The translations under genes were made by a program, and so were the position numbers. A DNA stretch of 63,508 bases, counting the filler, from Octopus bimaculoides (lineage: Eukaryota): assembly GCF_001194135.2 (NCBI RefSeq). It is 6 parts of 6 records of this genome, joined end to end, with 100 filler letters (N's around TTAATTAATTAA, not from the genome) between each part and the next. Parts side by side here need not be neighbours in the genome. Positions count along the whole stretch, not along the records: positions 6,141 to 16,090 come from NC_068985.1; 5 more parts are not named here. One strand, given 5' to 3'. Each line of letters begins with the position of its first letter. Positions within the stretch are counted from its first letter, which is position 1. The notes under the pieces are model-generated. The model saw only the letters and a program-made list of their open reading frames with translations. It searched no databases and was not told the DNA's origin. Of this stretch, positions 6,097-16,190 are shown piece by piece.

Positions 6097-6626
6097 NNNN
6101 NNNNNNNNNNNNNNNNNNNNNNNNNNNNNNNNNNNNNNNNTGTCCTCCGCAGATAGATGTGGAGGTCATAACGTTGTCCGTGTTGCATAGGCTGAAGGGA
6201 CTTAATGAGGAATATCGCTTGTGGCCGGGCGACGCCGACACGTCACCCGCTTTGTGCTTAAATGAGGCGTGGACGATGACGGTAGATGTGGTCACAAGCG
6301 ATGCTGGGGTGGAATATGGATAAAAAGTTGAAATGCCTCAATGTTATGAATTGAGGAGGGGTTTGAAACCTCATTTTGTTTAAAACAAAGTAAGAGGCGT
6401 AATGCCTCCTTTTTGTATCAATGAACATTGCGAACAGTGTAAGAGGCTTGTTGCCTCATATTTAAGAGAACAATATTTTCGGGGATCAGACAGTCGGCGG
6501 GCGCTGCTTGTTTCCCTCATTTATTCATTAATCATCATTTTTTCATTCACATAACATTATGTCTATGTCCAGCCCGCAGCTTCCCTTTTTCTGTTTGCGG
6601 CCTTTATGGTCAATCGTGATGAAATA

Positions 6627-7187
6627 AAGAAGCTTGCTTCCCAACCATATGGTTCCAGGTTCAGTCCCACTGTGTGGCACTTTCAGCAAGTGCCTAGTAT
6701 AGCCTCGGGCCGACCAAAGCCTTGTGAATGGGTTTGGTAAACGGAAACTGAAAGAAGTCCATCGTGTGTNNNNNNNNNNNNNNNNNNNNNNNNNNNNNNN
6801 NNNNNNNNNNNNNNNNNNNNNNNNNNNNNNNNNNNNNNNNNNNNNNNNNNNNNNNNNNNNNNNNNNNNNNNNNNNNNNNNNNNNNNNNNNNNNNNNNNNN
6901 NNNNNNNNNNNNNNNNNNNNNNNNNNNNNNNNNNNNNNNNNNNNNNNNNNNNNNTGTGTGTGTGTGTGTATGTATGTATGTTAGTGTGTTTGTGTCCCCC
7001 CCCCCCCACATCGCTTGATAACCGATGCTGGCGTGTTTACATCCCTGAAATTTAGCGGTTTGGCCAAAGAGACCGATAGAATAAGCACTAGGCTTACAAA
7101 GCATAAATCCTAGGGTCGATTTTTTCGACTAAAATCCTTTAAGGTGGTGCTCCAGCATGGCCGTAGTCAAGTGACTGAAACAAGTAA
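6627..7187 (+). mobile_element. tRNA-derived SINE, family A (5'-truncated, internal microsatellite gap)
   Basis: Collinear with copies at 17703 and 39623 (gcttgcttcccaacca..., gaccgatagaataag..., ctccagcatggcc...actgaaac). Confidence 0.85.
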
Positions 7188-7490
7188 TGAGATTGCACCT
7201 TGAAAGTTACCCTCCAAGGTACAAGTCCTGGCAAGGTGTTCATGGAAGATCAGCGGTCGCTGATGCATACCGGCCTCCCCTCTCCACGTCACCAGTGTTA
7301 TCCAACGGAAAGGCAAAGGCTGATACAGCTTGGCACCAGTGACGTCACAACTCATTTCTATAGCTGAGTGAACTGGAGCAATGTGAAATAAATTGTCTTG
7401 CTCAAGAATACAACACACGGCCCGGTCCGGGAATCGCACTTACTACCTCATGATTGTGTGCCCGACGCTCTAACCACTGAGCCATGCGCC
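7188..7490 (-). mobile_element. tRNA-derived SINE, family C
   Basis: Minus strand begins ggcgcatggctcagtggttagagc (A-box). Matches 61790-62065 and 63197-63493. Confidence 0.85.
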
Positions 7491-7640
7491 CCCCTCTCTC
7501 TCTTTCTTTCTCCCCCTCTCCCTCTCTCCCTCTCTCTCTCTCTCTCTCGCTCACACACACACACACACACACACACGTAAATTTGTGTGTGTGTGTACTA
7601 TTGAAATATATATATTATATATATAATAAATATCTATTAT

Positions 7641-7826
7641 CTTTTATTTGTTTCAATCATTAGACTGTGGTACTGCCTTGAAGAATTTTTGGTTGAATGA
7701 ATCGACCCCAATTCTTTCTTTTAAGCCCGGTATTTATTCTATTGTGCTATTTTGCTGAAGCGTCAAATTACAGGGGCGTAAACAAACCAATGCCAGTTGT
7801 AAAGCGGTGGTTGGTGGAGACAAATA
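7641..7826 (-). mobile_element. SINE family A, diverged 3' half
   Basis: Reverse-complement similarity to the 3' half of the 39623-40034 copy. Confidence 0.65.
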
Positions 7827-8034
7827 CATTTAATATCACATTCTGAAACCTGATTTTAAAGACACTACTCAGTAATGATTTCGGTAATTCAAGCGACCTT
7901 CCGAAATTACTTATAAATCTGAAATTTAATTGGATGCCTTCCACAATGTTTGTGTTTGTAGCAACAATCCTAACCTAGATATGTGATCAATGATCTAATG
8001 TAACCCTCTAACTTGTTGAGAAATGAGCTCCGCA

Positions 8035-8065
8035 ACGTAGGGTCGCTGCTGCAGCGACCCTACGT
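8035..8065. repeat. Perfect 31-bp GC-rich palindrome (15-bp arms, 1-nt spacer)
   Basis: ACGTAGGGTCGCTGC-T-GCAGCGACCCTACGT. Confidence 0.95.
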
Positions 8066-9608
8066 CATGTCCTCAAGATTCGGCTGTTATGGGGTGTTTC
8101 CCTCACCATCTTCTGCTGCCTAATCCCTCTTTTCTTTTTCTTTGTTTTCTTGTAAATTAAATTGTGATCCAATTTCATGCAAATAAAAAAAAAAGAAGCA
8201 AAAACAAAAATTTGTTGACTGTTTCCAACTTGATCAGAGTTATGAACATTCTGGTTCTAAATGAAAAGTCTAGTCTTTGAGATACTTTTGTTGATATGAT
8301 ACACGTGAGGTCACATCGAGTTTTAATTAAGAACTGGGAAACCCAACACTTTGTATTAAGTTTGAGGGTTCAGATGTGTACTATATTTTCACGACTTTCA
8401 TGACTGTAACCATTGTGTTTTGGTGCTGATGACGGGGATAGCTTATAATGACACCATTGGAGTGGAAATATGCATTCAAATCTTTCGTTGAAATGTGTCA
8501 TAACCTGTCACTATTGTGGCTAAGTGAAGCTTAGAGAAGGAAATTAAGAATGTGTAGTAAAATGAGATGGATTTAACTGGAGGGTGGGGGTCTTAGTTAC
8601 AGCTCAATTTTGGTTTAGAAGTACTGATTGAGAAGGATTCTGTAAAGTTATAAGAAATTCTTTTGGAAAGAGATCTGAAGACTCAACAACAATTTGGGAG
8701 GTAAAGGAAATTTCAGAATATACAATGGTTTTGCTGCCTTCATGATTATATTGTAGGTGTTGTGGTCGGGTTAGTAGTTTCCTGCAGGTGTGGCTGAGTG
8801 GTGGGTATGAATCTTTAGGTTAACTGAGATGGATCAAAGTTGAGTCACATTTTTTACAAGGGAGATGCAGAGGATTGTAGAGACAACAGTTGTACATCAG
8901 GATGGTGTGCTGTGTGGTACTGGTTAGATATTCTAAAGAGGAAAGAGATTATGATGGCAAGATAATGCCAAAATTTAGGGGTAAATATACAGATGAAGAT
9001 TGCATGGAGAGATGGTGTGTCGATCATGGATATATTATTGAGTGAGGATAGTAAATGATGTAAAATGTCAAGCGCGTATGGTGAAAGGTGAATATTGTTC
9101 AGAATACAATCAATTCATTCTACACACATGTATGTTGGAGAGTGAAGTGGTGTCCTCGATGTAAAATATAACTGATGTTGGTTGAAGGAACTGGAGCGAA
9201 GTTAGAGACATCAAATGATTGTAGAAGTATGAAAAGGAGAATTCTTTGGAAGTTTTCACTTGTGACATCCACAGATAAGTGGAGTGAGTGTAGTAAGGTG
9301 AGTGGAGTTTAACAATTAGGGTTGAGGGTGGAGACCAGACATGAGAGAGAGGCAGAAGATAGGGAAAGAGAGGGATGTAGCTTGCATGCTATCACGTGGC
9401 AGTAGGTGGTGCCTTTGTTGGGGGAGATAGAGTGGTGCATATATATGATAGATATGTGTGAATGTGTATACACACATCAACACACAGACATACACATACA
9501 CTCACACACAAACGCACACACACACACATATACAAATTGTTATTTAAAATAGTTTGATTTGTATATATATAAACATAAATAATGTGTATGTGTGTGTATG
9601 TAAATCTG

Positions 9609-9665
<57 letters not shown>

Positions 9666-10398
9666 AAGGTGTATATATGTATATATGGATGTGTGTGTGT
9701 GTATATATATGTATGTTTATACACACACACACACAAGCTTTCATATACATAGATACAAACATACTCAGACATACATGTTACACGAAATGCTTTTCTTTTG
9801 ACGAGGCAATAGTGGTGGTGGTTGCGGCGGCGGCGGTGGTGAGGCCCGGTGAAATATATCTGTGATGACTGTTTCTTAACAACAAGTAAGCCTGTCATGT
9901 GAGAGTAGGCTGCAGTTTGCTATAGCTGTAGATGGTGCAATTGTGAGGAGAGAATTCCTACTCGTGTGCAGCAACTAATGAACGAGTTAGGGCAGCAGCT
10001 GTTCGCATCTAACACATATATGATCATCATTTTTGGTGAACGAAGGTGCCAACAGGTGGGCATTAATTTAATGAGAGAATTTGGAAAGTGAAGGAGAATA
10101 TCGCATTTTCGTTTATTTTACCAGGAAATCCCCAGAAACTAAAAAAAGTATGTCTAAAATAAAATAAAACAAAACGTTATTAACAGTTCTGAGGGAGGCA
10201 CTGAGTGACAGTGCCGGTAGAGTGTTTGAGATGGGGTGTAACTGCTGTATTTAGTTTCGTCTCTTTCTCTTCTGAGTTCACTTTCCACCAAGTGTCATTG
10301 TTACACTTCAACTTTTCGTGGGTCGATGATTGCAGAATATGGTACCTTTCAATCATCGATTTAATTGAATACATCCATCACATAGCATTTGCTTTGAC

Positions 10399-10755
10399 GG
10401 CGGCTTGGCAGAATCGTTAGTGTGTCGAATAAAATGCTTCGCGATATTTGTTCCAGCTCTTTATGATTTGAGTTCAAATCCTACCGAGACCAATTTTGCT
10501 TTTGGTCCTTCCGGGGTCGATAAAATAAAGTACTAGTCAAGTACTAGGGTCAGAGTAATCAACTAATCTCCTCTGATGAAAACAAAATTAGAAATTAGCA
10601 TTATCATGGCGTCGAGCTGACAAAATCGTTTGCACTTTGGAAATAGTACTTAGCAGTAATTCTTCTGGCTCTTTACGTTCAGAGTTCAAATCCCGCTGAG
10701 GTCAACTTTGCCTTTTATCCTTTCAGGATCGATAAAATAAGCACCAGTCAAGTAC
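10399..10755 (+). mobile_element. Two tandem diverged SINE family B copies (~10399-10570, ~10612-10755)
   Basis: Shared head gctggcagaatcgttag and core gagttcaaatcc...ctttgcc..tcatcctt..ggggtcgataaa.taagtac. Confidence 0.8.
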
Positions 10756-10987
10756 TTATTTCATCCATCTTCTCATATGTGTGTGTATGTATATATATAT
10801 ATATATAATGATAGAAAAATAAGTCAGAAAATGGAGCGATCTTTATTTATTTATCTATTAATTTAATCGTCCATAATATCAATTTTTAAACCCTGGTACA
10901 TTTTTGCCGAACCACTGAGTTACTGGGATTATAATCAAACCAACACTGGTTGTGAAGAGGTGGTGAGGAGACAAGCACAAGCCCAGA

Positions 10988-11066
<79 letters not shown>

Positions 11067-12038
11067 NNNNNNNNNNNNNNNNNNNNNNNNNNNNNNNNNN
11101 NNNNNNNNNNNNNNNNNNNNNNNNNNNNNNNNNNNNNNNNNNNNNNNNNNNNNNNNNNNNNNNNNNNNNNNNNNNNNNNNNNNNNNNNNNNNNNNNNNNN
11201 NNNNNNNNNNNNNNNNNNNNNNNNNNNNNNNNNNNNNNNNNNNNNNNNNNNNNNNNNNNNNNNNNNNNNNNNNNNNNNNNNNNNNNNNNNNNNNNNNNNN
11301 NNNNNNNNNNNNNNNNNNNNNNNNNNNNNNNNNNNNNNNNNNNNNNNNNNNNNNNNNNNNNNNNNNNNNNNNNNNNNNNNNNNNNNNNNNNNNNNNNNNN
11401 NNNNNNNNNNNNNNNNNNNNNNNNNNNNNNNNNNNNNNNNNNNNNNNNNNNNNNNNNNNNNNNNNNNNNNNNNNNNNNNNNNNNNNNNNNNNNNNNNNNN
11501 NNNNNNNNNNNNNNNNNNNNNNNNNNNNNNNNNNNNNNNNNNNNNNNNNNNNNNNNNNNNNNNNNNNNNNNNNNNNNNNNNNNNNNNNNNNNNNNNNNNN
11601 NNNNNNNNNNNNNNNNNNNNNNNNNNNNNNNNNNNNNNNNNNNNNNNNNNNNNNNNNNNNNNNNNNNNNNNNNNNNNNNNNNNNNNNNNNNNNNNNNNNN
11701 NNNNNNNNNNNNNNNNNNNNNNNNNNNNNNNNNNNNNNNNNNNNNNNNNNNNNNNNNNNNNNNNNNNNNNNNNNNNNNNNNNNNNNNNNNNNNNNNNNNN
11801 NNNNNNNNNNNNNNNNNNNNNNNNNNNNNNNNNNNNNNNNNNNNNNNNNNNNNNNNNNNNNNNNNNNNNNNNNNNNNNNNNNNNNNNNNNNNNNNNNNNN
11901 NNNNNNNNNNNNNNNNNNNNNNNNNNNNNNNNNNNNNNNNNNNNNNNNNNNNNNNNNNNNNNNNNNNNNNNNNNNNNNNNNNNNNNNNNNNNNNNNNNNN
12001 NNNNNNNNNNNNNNNNNNNNNNNNNNNNNNNNNNNNNN

Positions 12039-12094
<56 letters not shown>

Positions 12095-12463
12095 ACAGAC
12101 ACACAGACACACACACACACACATAACGTTCATATACATACATATAGATAAAGAGAGCGACAGAGAGAGTAACACTTACTGGTTCATCTTTAACCTAGAA
12201 TGAACGTAGCGGAAGCAAAAAGAAAAAGAAAAAAAGAAAAACAGTGCATGTAAAAGAATGCTTCATCCTTCACCATTTAATGTTTGTATGGAAGGAGTTG
12301 AGTAGTATCGAGGGAGAATAGTATATCTCAGTCTAACTTCATCACCGCAGAATCCGGTGTTAAGCAGAGACTTCATGACTTATTGGAGAATTAAATTCTT
12401 AACAATTATTAACAGTTGTTTAAAGGGGAAGATATCTATTCACTGAAGCGCTTCCATGTGAGT

Positions 12464-12503
<40 letters not shown>

Positions 12504-12655
12504 GTGTGCGTGTGCGCACGCGCGCGTTGTAAGTATATATGTGCACGTATGTATGTATATGTGTGTATGTATATATATTCTTGCCAAATAAAAACACGCA
12601 CTACATATTCGTTCTTCACTCGTTTATTACTGTTCTTATTTTAACTGATGTCCAT

Positions 12656-12700
12656 TGTCCGGAAGTGTTTCATCACGCATTTGTGACCTCTTCAGCGACA
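12656..12700 (-). ncRNA. Degenerate minimal type I hammerhead-like motif, second family
   Basis: Minus strand reads TGTCG-CTGAAGA-G-GTCAC(aaatgc)GTGAT-GAAAC-AC-TTC-CGGACA. The core and 5-bp stem II are intact, stem III is broken, stem I has a bulge, and AATAAA follows about 30 nt downstream. Confidence 0.4.
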
Positions 12701-13092
12701 CTTTCCGTCTTCCTGTATTCTCCTGGTCTGCCTAGTCATTACATATATACATACATACATACATACATACATACAACGCATCCATAAAACAAACATACAA
12801 ATCTGCGCATACACTAACACCAAATACTGCACACACACACATGCACAAATACCTAGATGATGTTGATAAAAGTTCCAATGAAGGAGTCTTGAATCTATGT
12901 TAGAGTCCGGCTCTTTCTCTATGGACAAGAAATACAGAAATGAAACTGATTGATAACATACATACATACATATGTATGTAATATAGTTTGGGAAGTGCCC
13001 TTGAGTCACTCTCTTACTTCTAAATATTTATAAAAATATACATATACTCACTCATAGTTTGAGTTCTATTTTTCCTGTTTGCATCACTATAC

Positions 13093-13158
<66 letters not shown>

Positions 13159-13922
13159 GCACGAATGTGTGCGTGTGTATGCATGCTTGTGTATGCTTAT
13201 GTATGTATGTATGTTTGTATGTATGTATGTATGTATGCATGCATGCATGCATGTATGTATGTATATATGTATGTATGTATGCATGCATGCATGCATGTAT
13301 GTATGTATGTATGTATGTATGTATGTATGTATCTGTGTGTGTGTGCGCGCGCGCGCGCCTGCGAGTGTATTACATGTGTATGGATGTACCCATCTCTTCG
13401 CTAATGTATTTTACCATTTTAATTATCTTTTGGGCTAATATCATTTTGTGGTCTAAGCAAGAGAGGAGTCCTTAGATGTAGCGGTGGTGGTGATGGAGGT
13501 GGTGATGTGTGGAGGGAATGAATTGGATAATGTTTCGCTATTAACGCTTTTCCAGAAGTCATAAGTGGTGTTTAGTGACCGCAAGTGAGAAGCGATCTCG
13601 AGTCACAAGGTCGATTCTCCCTCTCTCTCTCTCTCTCTGTAATATAATTATAAGTATTAGTTTTAATGCAATAGCTAATATCAACAATGTTAATGTGATA
13701 TCTCTACTAAAAGCAGATACACGTAAAGTAGTTAAAATATTGTCGAAAGAAGAATAAAGTTTGGTAGGTTGGCCGCCTTTCCCCTCTCTTTCTTTTAGTC
13801 TTTCTACCCTACCCTCTCATCTCATTTAGTCTTTCGTCTTCCTTTTTCTCCCCGTTCATTTAGTCTTTGTCTTCCTCTCTTTCATTTCAGTCAGTGTTCC
13901 TCCTCCTCTTTCAGTTCATTTA

Positions 13923-14017
<95 letters not shown>

Positions 14018-14166
14018 GCTCTCTTCCTATAGATTCCTATATGGTTTTTATCTTAGTAATAATATGGCTCAGTAAGTTATCTCCCTTCAACTGTTTCCCA
14101 TTAATAAACATGCGCGTGTGTGTTAATTCGTTTTCTCTTCCTCTCTCTACCTGTTTCTCCTCCCAG

Positions 14167-14292
14167 CATCATCGACAATCTCAGGCATACTGAGCCGGTC
14201 CCCCCTCTACACCAACCTACCAACCAGCCAGCCAGCCAAACCGCCTGCCTGCCAACGCGCCTGCCTGCCAACTAACCAGCCAACCAGACAAG
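14167..14292 (+). other. Candidate non-coding 5' UTR exon of the tropomyosin-like gene
   Basis: Strong polypyrimidine acceptor (ttctcctcccAG at 14165-66) and donor AAG|GTAGTT at 14293. A matching acceptor TTTCAG at 14572-77 lies 7 nt before the ATG. Based on motifs only, with no transcript evidence. Confidence 0.3.
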
Positions 14293-14584
14293 GTAGTTTC
14301 TTTGACTTTCTGTATCTCATTCCACCTTATCTCCGTTTGGGTTAGTTGTGTGTGCGTGTGTGCCTGTCTACAGCTAGCAGCGGGCAGTGAAGTCAGGAAG
14401 TGCTTGAGTCGAGAAACAAAAATATTTAGGGGAAGAAAAACACCTAAACCAACTGAAGTAACTACCCCCCAAACGAAATATTCCTCAAGCAAAGTAGAAG
14501 GAATCTCGCAGTTCTGTATATATTCCATCGATTAGTTCAGAATAAAAAAGTTTTGTTGCAAATCGTAACTGTTTCAGATCAACC

Positions 14585-15328
14585 ATGGATGTTTGCAAGC
14601 AGAAAATGAAATCCCTTCGCCTTGAGGCGGAAACGGCCAAGGAAAAAGCAGACGAATTTGAAAAGAAGCTTAAAGAAGCGGAGCAAGCAAAATTCTTGTT
14701 GGAACAAGATTTGACAGCATGGCAGAAAAAATATAGTAGTTTAGAAAATGAACTAGACAATGTAACTCGAGAGTTGGAAAGAATACAGGATATAGAGAAA
14801 GCGAAGAACAAGCTGGATGACGAGTTGGTCTGGCAGCAGAAGAAATATGCCATCTTAGAACAGGACTTGGACAATGCTCAGAATGAATTGGAGAAGGTAA
14901 AGGATTGTTATGCTGCTAAGGAAAAAACGGAAGAAGAACTTACATGGCTTCAGAAAGCACACACTAACGTAGAGAAAGATCTCGATGATGTGACTTCTAA
15001 ACTCGAAAACACCGCTGACCGCTTGGATGGCTCTGAACAGAAAGTGTCCGAACTTGAAGCTGAGATCCAGGCTCTCCATCGTCGTATCCAAATGCAAGAA
15101 ATGGACTTGACTCGTAGTGAAGAGATGCTTGAATTGAAGAGTGTAAAAGAAGAGACCAACCAGGAGAAATTGAGTGAAGCCGAGTTGCGAGCGTCCACAG
15201 CCGAAGCGAACGTGACCCGACTGGAAGGAGAAATCGATAGGTTGGAGACGGAAGTACAGGCCGAAAAAGACAAATACCAAGTTTTGTGTGACGATTTGGA
15301 AACTGCGTACGCCGAACTGTCAGTTTAA
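14585..15328 (+). CDS. Divergent tropomyosin-like coiled-coil protein, 247 aa, uninterrupted CDS
   Basis: N-terminus MDVCKQKMKSLRLEAETAKEKADEFE resembles MDAIKKKM..MK.EKENA.DRA. EAEIQALHRRIQ..EMDL.RSEE resembles the tropomyosin [23 protein letters not shown] motif. C-terminus EIDRLETEVQAEKDKY...DLETAYAEL resembles EVDRLEDEL.AEKE.Y...ELD.TFAEL. No proline, good start context (aaccATGG), the only long non-repeat ORF in the window. Confidence 0.9.
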   Translation: MDVCKQKMKSLRLEAETAKEKADEFEKKLKEAEQAKFLLEQDLTAWQKKYSSLENELDNVTRELERIQDIEKAKNKLDDELVWQQKKYAILEQDLDNAQNELEKVKDCYAAKEKTEEELTWLQKAHTNVEKDLDDVTSKLENTADRLDGSEQKVSELEAEIQALHRRIQMQEMDLTRSEEMLELKSVKEETNQEKLSEAELRASTAEANVTRLEGEIDRLETEVQAEKDKYQVLCDDLETAYAELSV

Positions 15329-16049
15329 GAAGTTTATCTTTATTTCTCTCCTTCTTCTTCTGCTGTATGAATTTTCTGATTTCTCCTTTCTCCACACCAC
15401 TCCAATCTTTTCACCTTTTCCTTCTCTTGTCTAATGACTGCCCAATCTTGTTGACACGCTTAAGACATTGCCATTGTGATTACGCTATTACAATTAAGAC
15501 ACGAGCAACAACAACAACAACAACAACAACATCAACAACACCAACATCAGCAACAACATCGATCGCAACAATGACTACATTTCTGACAAGACCAAAAAGT
15601 GAATATATACTTAAAACCTTCGAAATGTTCAACGTTAAGAAGATGCTTTGATATCCGTGAGTATAATGGTTTTTTTCCCCTCTACAACTTCTTCAACAGC
15701 AATCACAACAATACTTACATATATGGAGATGTTTAGGGCAGAAAAAAATAATTTTTACTGACAGATACAAACTACCGCATATTGCCTGACACTGATTTAT
15801 ATAGTGTCTATATCATATGTGTGTGTGTGTGTGTGTATACATACTTACGTACATACACGCATACACACACACACACATACATACACGCACGCGCGCACAC
15901 TGTACACTAATACTGGTCTATTTAAAATGTACAGTTGATATGATATATACTGTCCAATGTTATTTACTGTCTATCAAGTAGGTACTGTCTATATAATATA
16001 TAGTGTCTACAGGATATAAACTGTGTATATAAAATATACTATCTCCCTT

Positions 16050-16082
<33 letters not shown>

Positions 16083-16190
16083 TATATATANNNNNNNNNN
16101 NNNNNNNNNNNNNNNNNNNNNNNNNNNNNNNNNNTTAATTAATTAANNNNNNNNNNNNNNNNNNNNNNNNNNNNNNNNNNNNNNNNNNNN

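Follow-up and report, generated by a model that had tools for sequence, protein, structure and literature searches.

How did a tropomyosin come to carry three copies of the same 38-residue stretch, and does it still work as one? The question is raised by positions 14585..15328 (plus strand) of the window, by which we mean the whole 63,508-nucleotide stretch of Octopus bimaculoides DNA analysed here (NCBI RefSeq assembly GCF_001194135.2; six parts of six records joined by filler, with positions 6,141 to 16,090 coming from NC_068985.1). This open reading frame (ORF) is a complete single-exon coding sequence (CDS) for a short tropomyosin, identified from the ORF list and by Pfam PF00261. It begins MDVCKQKM, finishes AELSV* and runs for 247 codons without interruption, with the stop at 15326-15328. 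An identical gene call of 247 amino acids (aa) is present in GCA_001194135.2 on O. bimaculoides chromosome CM046605.1 (63.20-63.22 Mb). We consider it likely that the ORF is a functional, lineage-specific member of a short single-coding-exon tropomyosin family, expanded from an ancestor of ~171 aa by duplication of a 38-residue module.

Pfam PF00261 (Tropomyosin) scores the 247-aa protein at 79.6 bits (E 3.2e-22; gathering score 38.6 bits), aligning residues 1-246 to profile positions 1-240 of 242, and on sequence similarity the protein is assigned to the tropomyosin family. In a phmmer search against solved structures, muscle tropomyosins were matched in three pieces (best E 2.6e-14). Residues 1-68 are collinear with residues 1-68 of the muscle chain; residues 139-181 align with canonical 63-105 at an offset of exactly 76, placing EAEIQALHRRIQ opposite DAEADVASLNRRIQ; and residues 126-244 align with canonical 162-280 at an offset of 36. 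An earlier note on this DNA had claimed that the chain resumes after its repeats with a segment like canonical ~70-107 and proceeds directly to the C-terminus, having apparently lost the canonical middle. The piecewise alignment bears out both statements, with the qualification that the missing 112 residues are absent family-wide rather than from this gene specifically.

The chain can accordingly be divided as follows, all on the plus strand. The N-terminal segment (residues 1-31, 14585..14677), part of the collinear region 1-68, begins MDVCKQKMKSLRLE in heptad phase 0. It is followed by three modules defined by ungapped alignment: R1 (residues 32-69, 14678..14791), homologous to canonical period-2 residues 32-69, R2 (residues 70-107, 14792..14905), in heptad phase +3, and R3 (residues 108-145, 14906..15019), in phase +6. 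Residues 146-181 (15020..15127), which hold the EAEIQALHRRIQ motif, are collinear with canonical 70-105 (phmmer domain pairing query 139-244 with chain 63-164) and also with residues 70-105 of the 171-aa form described below. The C-terminal segment (residues 182-247, 15128..15325) is placed by the alignment of query 126-244 to chain 162-280, with residues 195-247 corresponding to canonical 231-283. Conserved terminal segments for head-to-tail overlap are present at both ends by similarity, the overlap complex itself being presumed. The N-terminus (MDxxKxKM) is of the high-molecular-weight (HMW) exon-1a type, not exon-1b. An AlphaFold2 monomer model consists of a single helix from residue 2 to 246 (mean predicted local distance difference test, pLDDT, 91.9) with no dip at the module borders. 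A Foldseek search of this model against the PDB returned no hits, which we take as expected for a lone long helix and uninformative.

The claim that residues 32-69, 70-107 and 108-145 align without gaps was upheld, with 18/38 identities for R1/R2 and 15/38 each for R1/R3 and the remaining pair. The ungapped self-score of the protein is highest at offset 38 (181), followed by offset 76 (84). Plain shuffles reached 43±7 (max 71), and heptad-preserving shuffles, in which each residue is kept in its heptad class, reached 34.8±14.5 at offset 38 (max 97) and 84±17 at any offset (max 134). The offset-38 score is ~10 standard deviations (SD) above the heptad-preserving shuffles. In canonical 277-294-aa tropomyosins from the same search the peak mostly falls at a multiple of 7 (such as 42, 77 or 56) and scores 50-106. 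The repeat excess is real, as the score exceeds the shuffles and most of the canonical proteins, and does so at a non-heptad offset. The one outlier among the proteins scored was P0033 (283 aa, tropomyosin-like), with a self-score of 206 at offset 147, suggesting that another organism has a different internal duplication, or that its model is chimeric.

At the DNA level the modules are 58, 49 and 47 % identical, and Tandem Repeats Finder detected no DNA-level tandem repeat in the gene, the copies being just 47-58 % identical. This degree of divergence indicates that the duplication is old and not an assembly artefact. R1 shares 16/38 residues with positions 32-69 of the canonical tropomyosin P0008, R2 shares 18/38 with the single module of the 171-aa form, and R3 shares 17/38 with that module and 28/38 with its equivalent in the transcript fragment P0001. 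The presence of three Trp (W46, W83 and W121) was correctly recorded in the earlier note, and 11 of the 15 canonical-length hits lack Trp altogether. The three do not all share a register, as W46 sits a column further right than the other two in the 38-residue frame. Of the three Cys in the protein (residues 4, 108 and 235), Cys4 falls at a core d position and every 171-, 209- and 247-aa member has it, while Cys108 lies in the core at the second of the heptad breaks described next and is kept in all 247-type sequences (P0001, P0002 and L005). Both could form interchain disulfides in a parallel dimer.

Since 38 equals 5x7+3, each repeat had been expected to shift the heptad phase, and it does so by +3 per copy (0→3→6). 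By a sliding count of hydrophobic a/d positions, the phase is 0 to approximately residue 60, 3 for approximately 64-100 and 6 from approximately 106 to the end. The core-position listing and the phase scan place the first break at the R1/R2 border (14783..14794, plus strand; L64(a)-I67(d)-Q-D-I70-...-K74(a)) and the second at the R2/R3 border (14897..14908, plus strand; L102(a)-V105(d)-K-D-C108-...-K112(a)). Both are stammers in the sense used for fungal tropomyosins (PMC11626781, PMC3805550), where three residues are added, which equals the loss of four. The core spacing is 3-3-4 at both module borders, and the same pattern is seen at both borders in the L005 orthologue. The 171-aa form and the canonical controls keep a single heptad phase throughout; the 209-aa form shifts once (0→3) and the 247-aa form twice. 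Each module carries matching residues at matching heptad positions, and can therefore be regarded as a self-contained structural copy. Animal tropomyosins have been described as being without stammers (PMC11626781), and the uninterrupted heptad repeat that characterises them is absent from the 247-aa protein. Uninterrupted heptads define the animal subgroup rather than the tropomyosin family, because fungal members break the rule too.

An indexed homology search with the 247-aa protein alone returned a single fragment. An exhaustive HMMER search found almost nothing between it and ordinary tropomyosins other than P0003, a 171-aa protein of 47 % identity deposited as 'tropomyosin-2-like [Argonauta hians]' (NCBI GAB1608282.1). 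Orthologues of this 171-aa protein are present in O. vulgaris (P0073) and in O. bimaculoides (ORF L004:14172-14687). In Argonauta and O. bimaculoides alike, a 209-aa ORF (L002:2415-3044 and L004:4537-5166, respectively) lies 7-9.6 kb upstream of the 171-aa ORF and on its strand. The resulting group, the octopod single-exon short tropomyosin family (171/209/247 aa), is one defined in this analysis. Its members hold one, two and three modules respectively, and a MAFFT alignment of the family contains gaps of exactly 38 or 76 residues only. Common traits are an uninterrupted CDS, an MxxCKxKM start, CDDLE/CEDLD near the C-terminus, the 112-residue central deletion and the 1-3 modules. Against PF00261, scores of 68-73 bits, all above the cut-off, were obtained for the L005 orthologue and for the 171- and 209-aa paralogues. 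Within the family the 247-aa protein is the divergent member: residues 1-31 are identical to those of the 171- and 209-aa paralogues at 12-15 of 31 positions, and it is ~45 % identical to either, compared with ~80 % between the 209- and 171-aa genes over their last 102 residues. The 209/171-aa pair forms a tandem on CM046607.1, and the 247-aa gene is alone on CM046605.1.

Annotation of the family is uneven. The 171-aa genes bear automatic names in NCBI and UniRef, and the deposited O. bimaculoides model P0074 ('tropomyosin Por p 1.0101'; 193 aa, L004:10001-14687, CM046607.1) has a different first exon. It splices an upstream exon into the interior of the intact 171-codon single-exon ORF L004:14172-14687 and displaces the conserved MEACKKKM N-terminus, representing either a mis-model or an alternative N-terminus. 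The 209-aa ORFs L004:4537-5166 and L002:2415-3044 were called as genes yet occurred in no protein-database search result and had no precomputed Pfam record, and the two-module proteins appear to be missing from public protein sets. In a literature search of incomplete coverage, no papers were found on the short family, on a 38-residue length series or on stammers in animal tropomyosin.

The paralogues also bear on the direction of change. Compared with the molluscan-type 284-aa protein P0008, the 171-aa form is collinear at 1-102, and its residues 119-171 correspond to 231-283, so that the 112 residues absent equal exactly 16 heptads. It holds one module followed by the LNRKI/LHRRI segment at canonical spacing, as in the outgroup. 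This shared one-module layout is therefore most simply ancestral, and supports expansion of the 209- and 247-aa forms from a one-module ancestor of ~171 aa. The earlier note had offered two origins; on the basis of the one- and two-module paralogues, growth of a ~171-aa four-period ancestor to six periods is favoured, and replacement of central periods by N-terminal copies is less favoured.

Evidence that the gene is more than an open frame comes from L005, a 953-nt Logan contig of another species (run SRR9970006) with a poly(A) end, which encodes a full-length orthologue starting MDVCKNKM. With one A removed from L005:541-549 it reads through 247 codons at 74 % aa identity to the octopus protein and with no codon indels. 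The description of the locus as intronless holds for the coding sequence, this foreign messenger RNA (mRNA) contig being collinear with the genomic CDS over ~750 nt. Nucleotide similarity (73 %) is confined to the CDS. The proportion of differences at nonsynonymous sites (pN) is 0.157 and at synonymous sites (pS) 0.753, the latter saturated; only pN/pS is used in the deep comparisons, as the synonymous rate (dS) is inestimable at saturation. The modules correspond one to one with those of L005, with 27/38 (R1), 26/38 (R2) and 26/38 (R3) identities on the diagonal and 10-21 off it, and the triplication is therefore older than the split from the L005 species. W46, W83, W121, C4, C108 and the a/d core residues are all kept.

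Two further fragments, P0001 and P0002 (runs ERR1711900 and ERR1711879), are 72-76 % identical to the 247-aa protein without gaps, and P0001, P0002 and L005 are mutually distinct (79-89 %). We take the runs of the two fragments (ERR17118xx/ERR17119xx) to be ocean metatranscriptomes. The 'MG...' starts of both coincide with internal Met 73 of L005, and they are therefore read as 5'-truncated contigs; no contigs encoding P0001 were found. For calibration, the 171-aa gene of O. bimaculoides compared with O. vulgaris gave a dS of 0.20 and a ratio of nonsynonymous to synonymous rates (ω) of 0.16, and its comparison with Argonauta gave saturated synonymous sites and a nonsynonymous rate (dN) of 0.10. 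A polyadenylated orthologue with the same 247 codons, three orthologous modules and pN far below pS together argue that the 247-aa gene is old, expressed (as transcripts of other species) and under purifying selection. It had been proposed that a full-length collinear match to a low-molecular-weight (LMW) tropomyosin with no internal repeat excess, or disrupted and unexpressed orthologues, would speak against the triplication. The closest such match, a 242-aa tropomyosin, reaches only 23 % identity (E 2.9e-4), the repeat shows a strong excess, and the orthologue is both undisrupted and transcribed.

Cryo-electron microscopy of the cardiac thin filament has shown bridges from actin K326/K328 to tropomyosin D20/E23, D58/E62 and D254/E257 (PMC9832952). 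In the 247-aa protein the D20/E23 positions are acidic (E20, D23), as are those of D254/E257 (D218, E221). Equivalents of Q47-K48-K49, E54 and D58 are kept in every module, the first as QKK in R1 and R2 and as QKA in R3. Judged by these residues, the three modules have the features of quasi-repeating actin-binding periods of ~39 residues with conserved charged surface residues.

A stepwise mechanism can be proposed. The ancestor of ~171 aa would have been a canonical tropomyosin minus 112 central residues (16 heptads), its heptads unbroken. Tandem in-frame duplication of a 38-residue stretch (canonical 32-69, actin-binding period 2) would then have produced the two-module 209-aa and three-module 247-aa forms. 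Each added module would bring its own core register and put a 3-residue stammer at the border, the stammer supplying the local overwinding needed by a non-heptad insert. One continuous helix would pair with another in a parallel two-stranded coiled coil, overwound locally at two points, and the conserved N- and C-termini would support head-to-tail polymerisation. Each module may contact one actin subunit, such that 171-, 209- and 247-aa dimers would span ~4, 5 and 6 actins. The absent centre includes the mid-molecule troponin-T site. Because this central region is missing, the 247-aa protein probably regulates cytoskeletal filaments, as opposed to being a muscle tropomyosin under troponin control.

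The protein was also compared with known tropomyosins. With canonical HMW tropomyosin (284 aa; PDB 1C1G, 2TMA; P0008) it shares the Pfam family, the N-terminus (1-68), the LxRRIQ segment, the collinear last ~55 residues, charged residues at the actin-contact positions of periods 1, 2 and 7, and an all-helical prediction. It differs in lacking the 112 central residues and having two extra period-2 copies, as well as in its two heptad breaks, three Trp, three Cys and one coding exon. In Saccharomyces cerevisiae, Tpm1 (199 aa) corresponds to Tpm2 (161 aa) with a 38-residue internal duplication, spanning five as opposed to four actins (PMC12440208, PMC2120352). The octopod family resembles this pair in its 38-residue paralogue step and in the stammer, a feature seen in fungi; it represents an independent event in another kingdom, with two steps (1, 2 and 3 modules) compared with one in yeast. 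In fungi, stammer-containing tropomyosins still assemble into cables and bind to actin (PMC11626781, PMC3805550). In the crystal structure of Schizosaccharomyces pombe Cdc8 the coiled coil is continuous through the stammer, where its pitch is locally shorter and its curvature greater (PMC11626781). Cdc8 (161 aa; PDB 8PUZ/8PV0/9FF9) is likewise short, with ~four periods and a stammer. Its similarity to the 247-aa protein is marginal (E 0.58), and its one central stammer is unlinked to any recent repeat.

Several observations weigh against the reading of the 247-aa ORF as a functional, module-expanded tropomyosin. The L005 transcript carries a 1-nt frameshift within an A9 homopolymer (L005:541-549), probably a sequencing or assembly error rather than a real frameshift or transcriptional slippage. 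All transcript evidence is from species other than O. bimaculoides, and no canonical AATAAA is found within ~760 nt 3' of the stop. The E62 equivalent is lost in all modules (R, N and S), and the two breaks could impair canonical actin binding, animal tropomyosins having none. Dimerisation, actin binding, stoichiometry, dimer register and cellular role are inferred parts of this reading. With regard to module number, the starting point could also have been an ancestor with two modules, one of which the 171-aa gene lost by a precise unequal crossover, and at 38 residues the module identity matrix is too noisy to distinguish shared from separate duplications in the 209- and 247-aa genes.

The serious rival, which we nonetheless regard as unlikely, is a neofunctionalised coiled coil that has left actin regulation and now acts as another scaffold or partner-binding protein. 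Such a change would fit the faster evolution of the gene: its dN from the 171-aa gene is 0.49, where the 209- and 171-aa genes differ by 0.12-0.18, and its dN from L005 (0.18) is about twice the 0.08-0.10 of the 171/209 genes over the Octopus-Argonauta split. It would also fit the ~45 % identity to the paralogues, the conservation of W46, W83 and W121 as surface Trp residues in a family where most canonical proteins have none, the unconserved E62 equivalent, and the two heptad breaks, stammers being described as absent from animal tropomyosins. However, both terminal overlap segments are still present, as are the QKK/E/D contact positions in each module; the stammer-bearing tropomyosins of fungi are bona fide actin binders, and a 38-residue module is the very step that adds one actin subunit in yeast. 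An ordinary ~248-aa six-period LMW tropomyosin, with a repeat that merely reflects the usual weak periodicity, is a very improbable account. The length of 247 aa agrees with it, the Pfam model aligns end to end, and the 242-aa tropomyosin P0056 aligns from 1-246 to 1-240. That last alignment is weak (23 % identity, E 2.9e-4), and the piecewise alignment to the 284-aa form is far stronger; moreover, the repeat offset of 38 is not a multiple of 7 and stands well outside the heptad-preserving shuffles, the paralogues differ by exactly 38 and 76 residues, and the N-terminus is of exon-1a type. Vertebrate LMW tropomyosins (~248 aa; PDB 8IAH chains, 'Tropomyosin 3', 248 aa) resemble the octopus protein in near-equal length and presumably in a six-actin span, whereas their full-length alignment to it is weak (E 0.002-0.014). 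Their length arises from an alternative exon 1b replacing exons 1a+2, with continuous heptads and with no middle deletion or period-2 re-expansion.

A decaying processed pseudogene (retrocopy) with a frame left open by chance is hardly tenable. Points in its favour are that the CDS is intronless and isolated, with neighbouring genes absent over 10 kb in each direction, that a canonical poly(A) signal is lacking close downstream, and that the exact 247-aa sequence does not occur in a collection of 15 billion proteins. Against it stand 247 intact codons and an orthologue that, though distant enough for synonymous sites to be saturated (pS 0.75), matches in length without any codon indel and has a pN of 0.157, with similarity ending at the CDS borders; the polyadenylated L005 transcript, three further distinct transcript fragments and a conserved a/d core also count against it. 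No poly(A) tract, one hallmark of a retrogene, was seen within 760 nt downstream of the ORF, and at ~30 % identity to canonical tropomyosin such a hallmark would have decayed. That the triplication is an artefact of the O. bimaculoides genome assembly is of negligible probability. Several N gaps and many microsatellites nearby could raise the suspicion, but copies of just 47-58 % DNA identity are beyond what an assembler can create, and all three modules recur in an independent mRNA contig, with modules 2 and 3 in two more transcript fragments from other runs. A functional tropomyosin expanded by module duplication remains the reading we favour.

The surroundings of the gene contain little else. 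A candidate 3' splice acceptor (tgtttcag, 14570-14577, plus strand), read from the sequence, ends 7 nt before the ATG and would imply an intron in the 5' untranslated region (5'UTR). A TATATAT motif lies at 14517-14523, 62-68 nt 5' of the ATG. The L005 5'UTR has no similarity to the DNA upstream of the 247-aa ORF. In the 20 kb around the gene (10 kb each side) no other convincing gene was found, only microsatellites, N gaps and a transposon-like ORF. The latter encodes 175 aa on the minus strand ~9 kb downstream, outside the window (L001:19557-20084); its motifs are, we believe, like the C-terminal part of retrotransposon proteins, making it a likely transposon fragment. Upstream microsatellites include (TC)48, (TATG)34, (CA/AC)n and (TA)39, among positions 13926-14024, 13198-13332, 10990-12123 and 9609-9686, with several N gaps, and a low-complexity CCAGCCAACC-type stretch lies at ~14215-14290. 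Four long antisense ORFs (107-141 aa) overlap the gene on the minus strand at 14485-15395; we attribute them to the GAA/AAG-rich composition of the coiled-coil coding strand and do not count them as genes. An Rfam scan of the piece holding the gene gave no match.

The analysis flags unannotated or mis-modelled genes, namely the 209-aa ORFs and the 193-aa model of the 171-aa gene, as well as divergent tropomyosin-like proteins of edible cephalopods that carry automatic allergen-derived names. A broader proposal, which we put forward tentatively, is that octopods, and perhaps cephalopods generally, may have evolved a graded single-exon cytoskeletal set spanning 4, 5 and 6 actins by stepwise duplication of a single self-contained actin-binding module of 38 residues, joined at stammers. 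Animals would thereby have arrived independently at the fungal Tpm2/Tpm1 solution, and these would be the first animal tropomyosins with heptad breaks. Tropomyosin length sets the number of actin subunits covered per molecule, and the relation between the ~39-residue period and the 7-residue coiled-coil repeat has long been a structural problem. The octopod series of 1, 2 and 3 identical-register modules with 0, 1 and 2 stammers, in one animal lineage and under purifying selection, offers a natural test of a portable 'one-actin' unit and a clean case of convergence with yeast Tpm1/Tpm2. If this holds true, 'five heptads plus a stammer' would be a general structural unit that adds one actin to tropomyosin.

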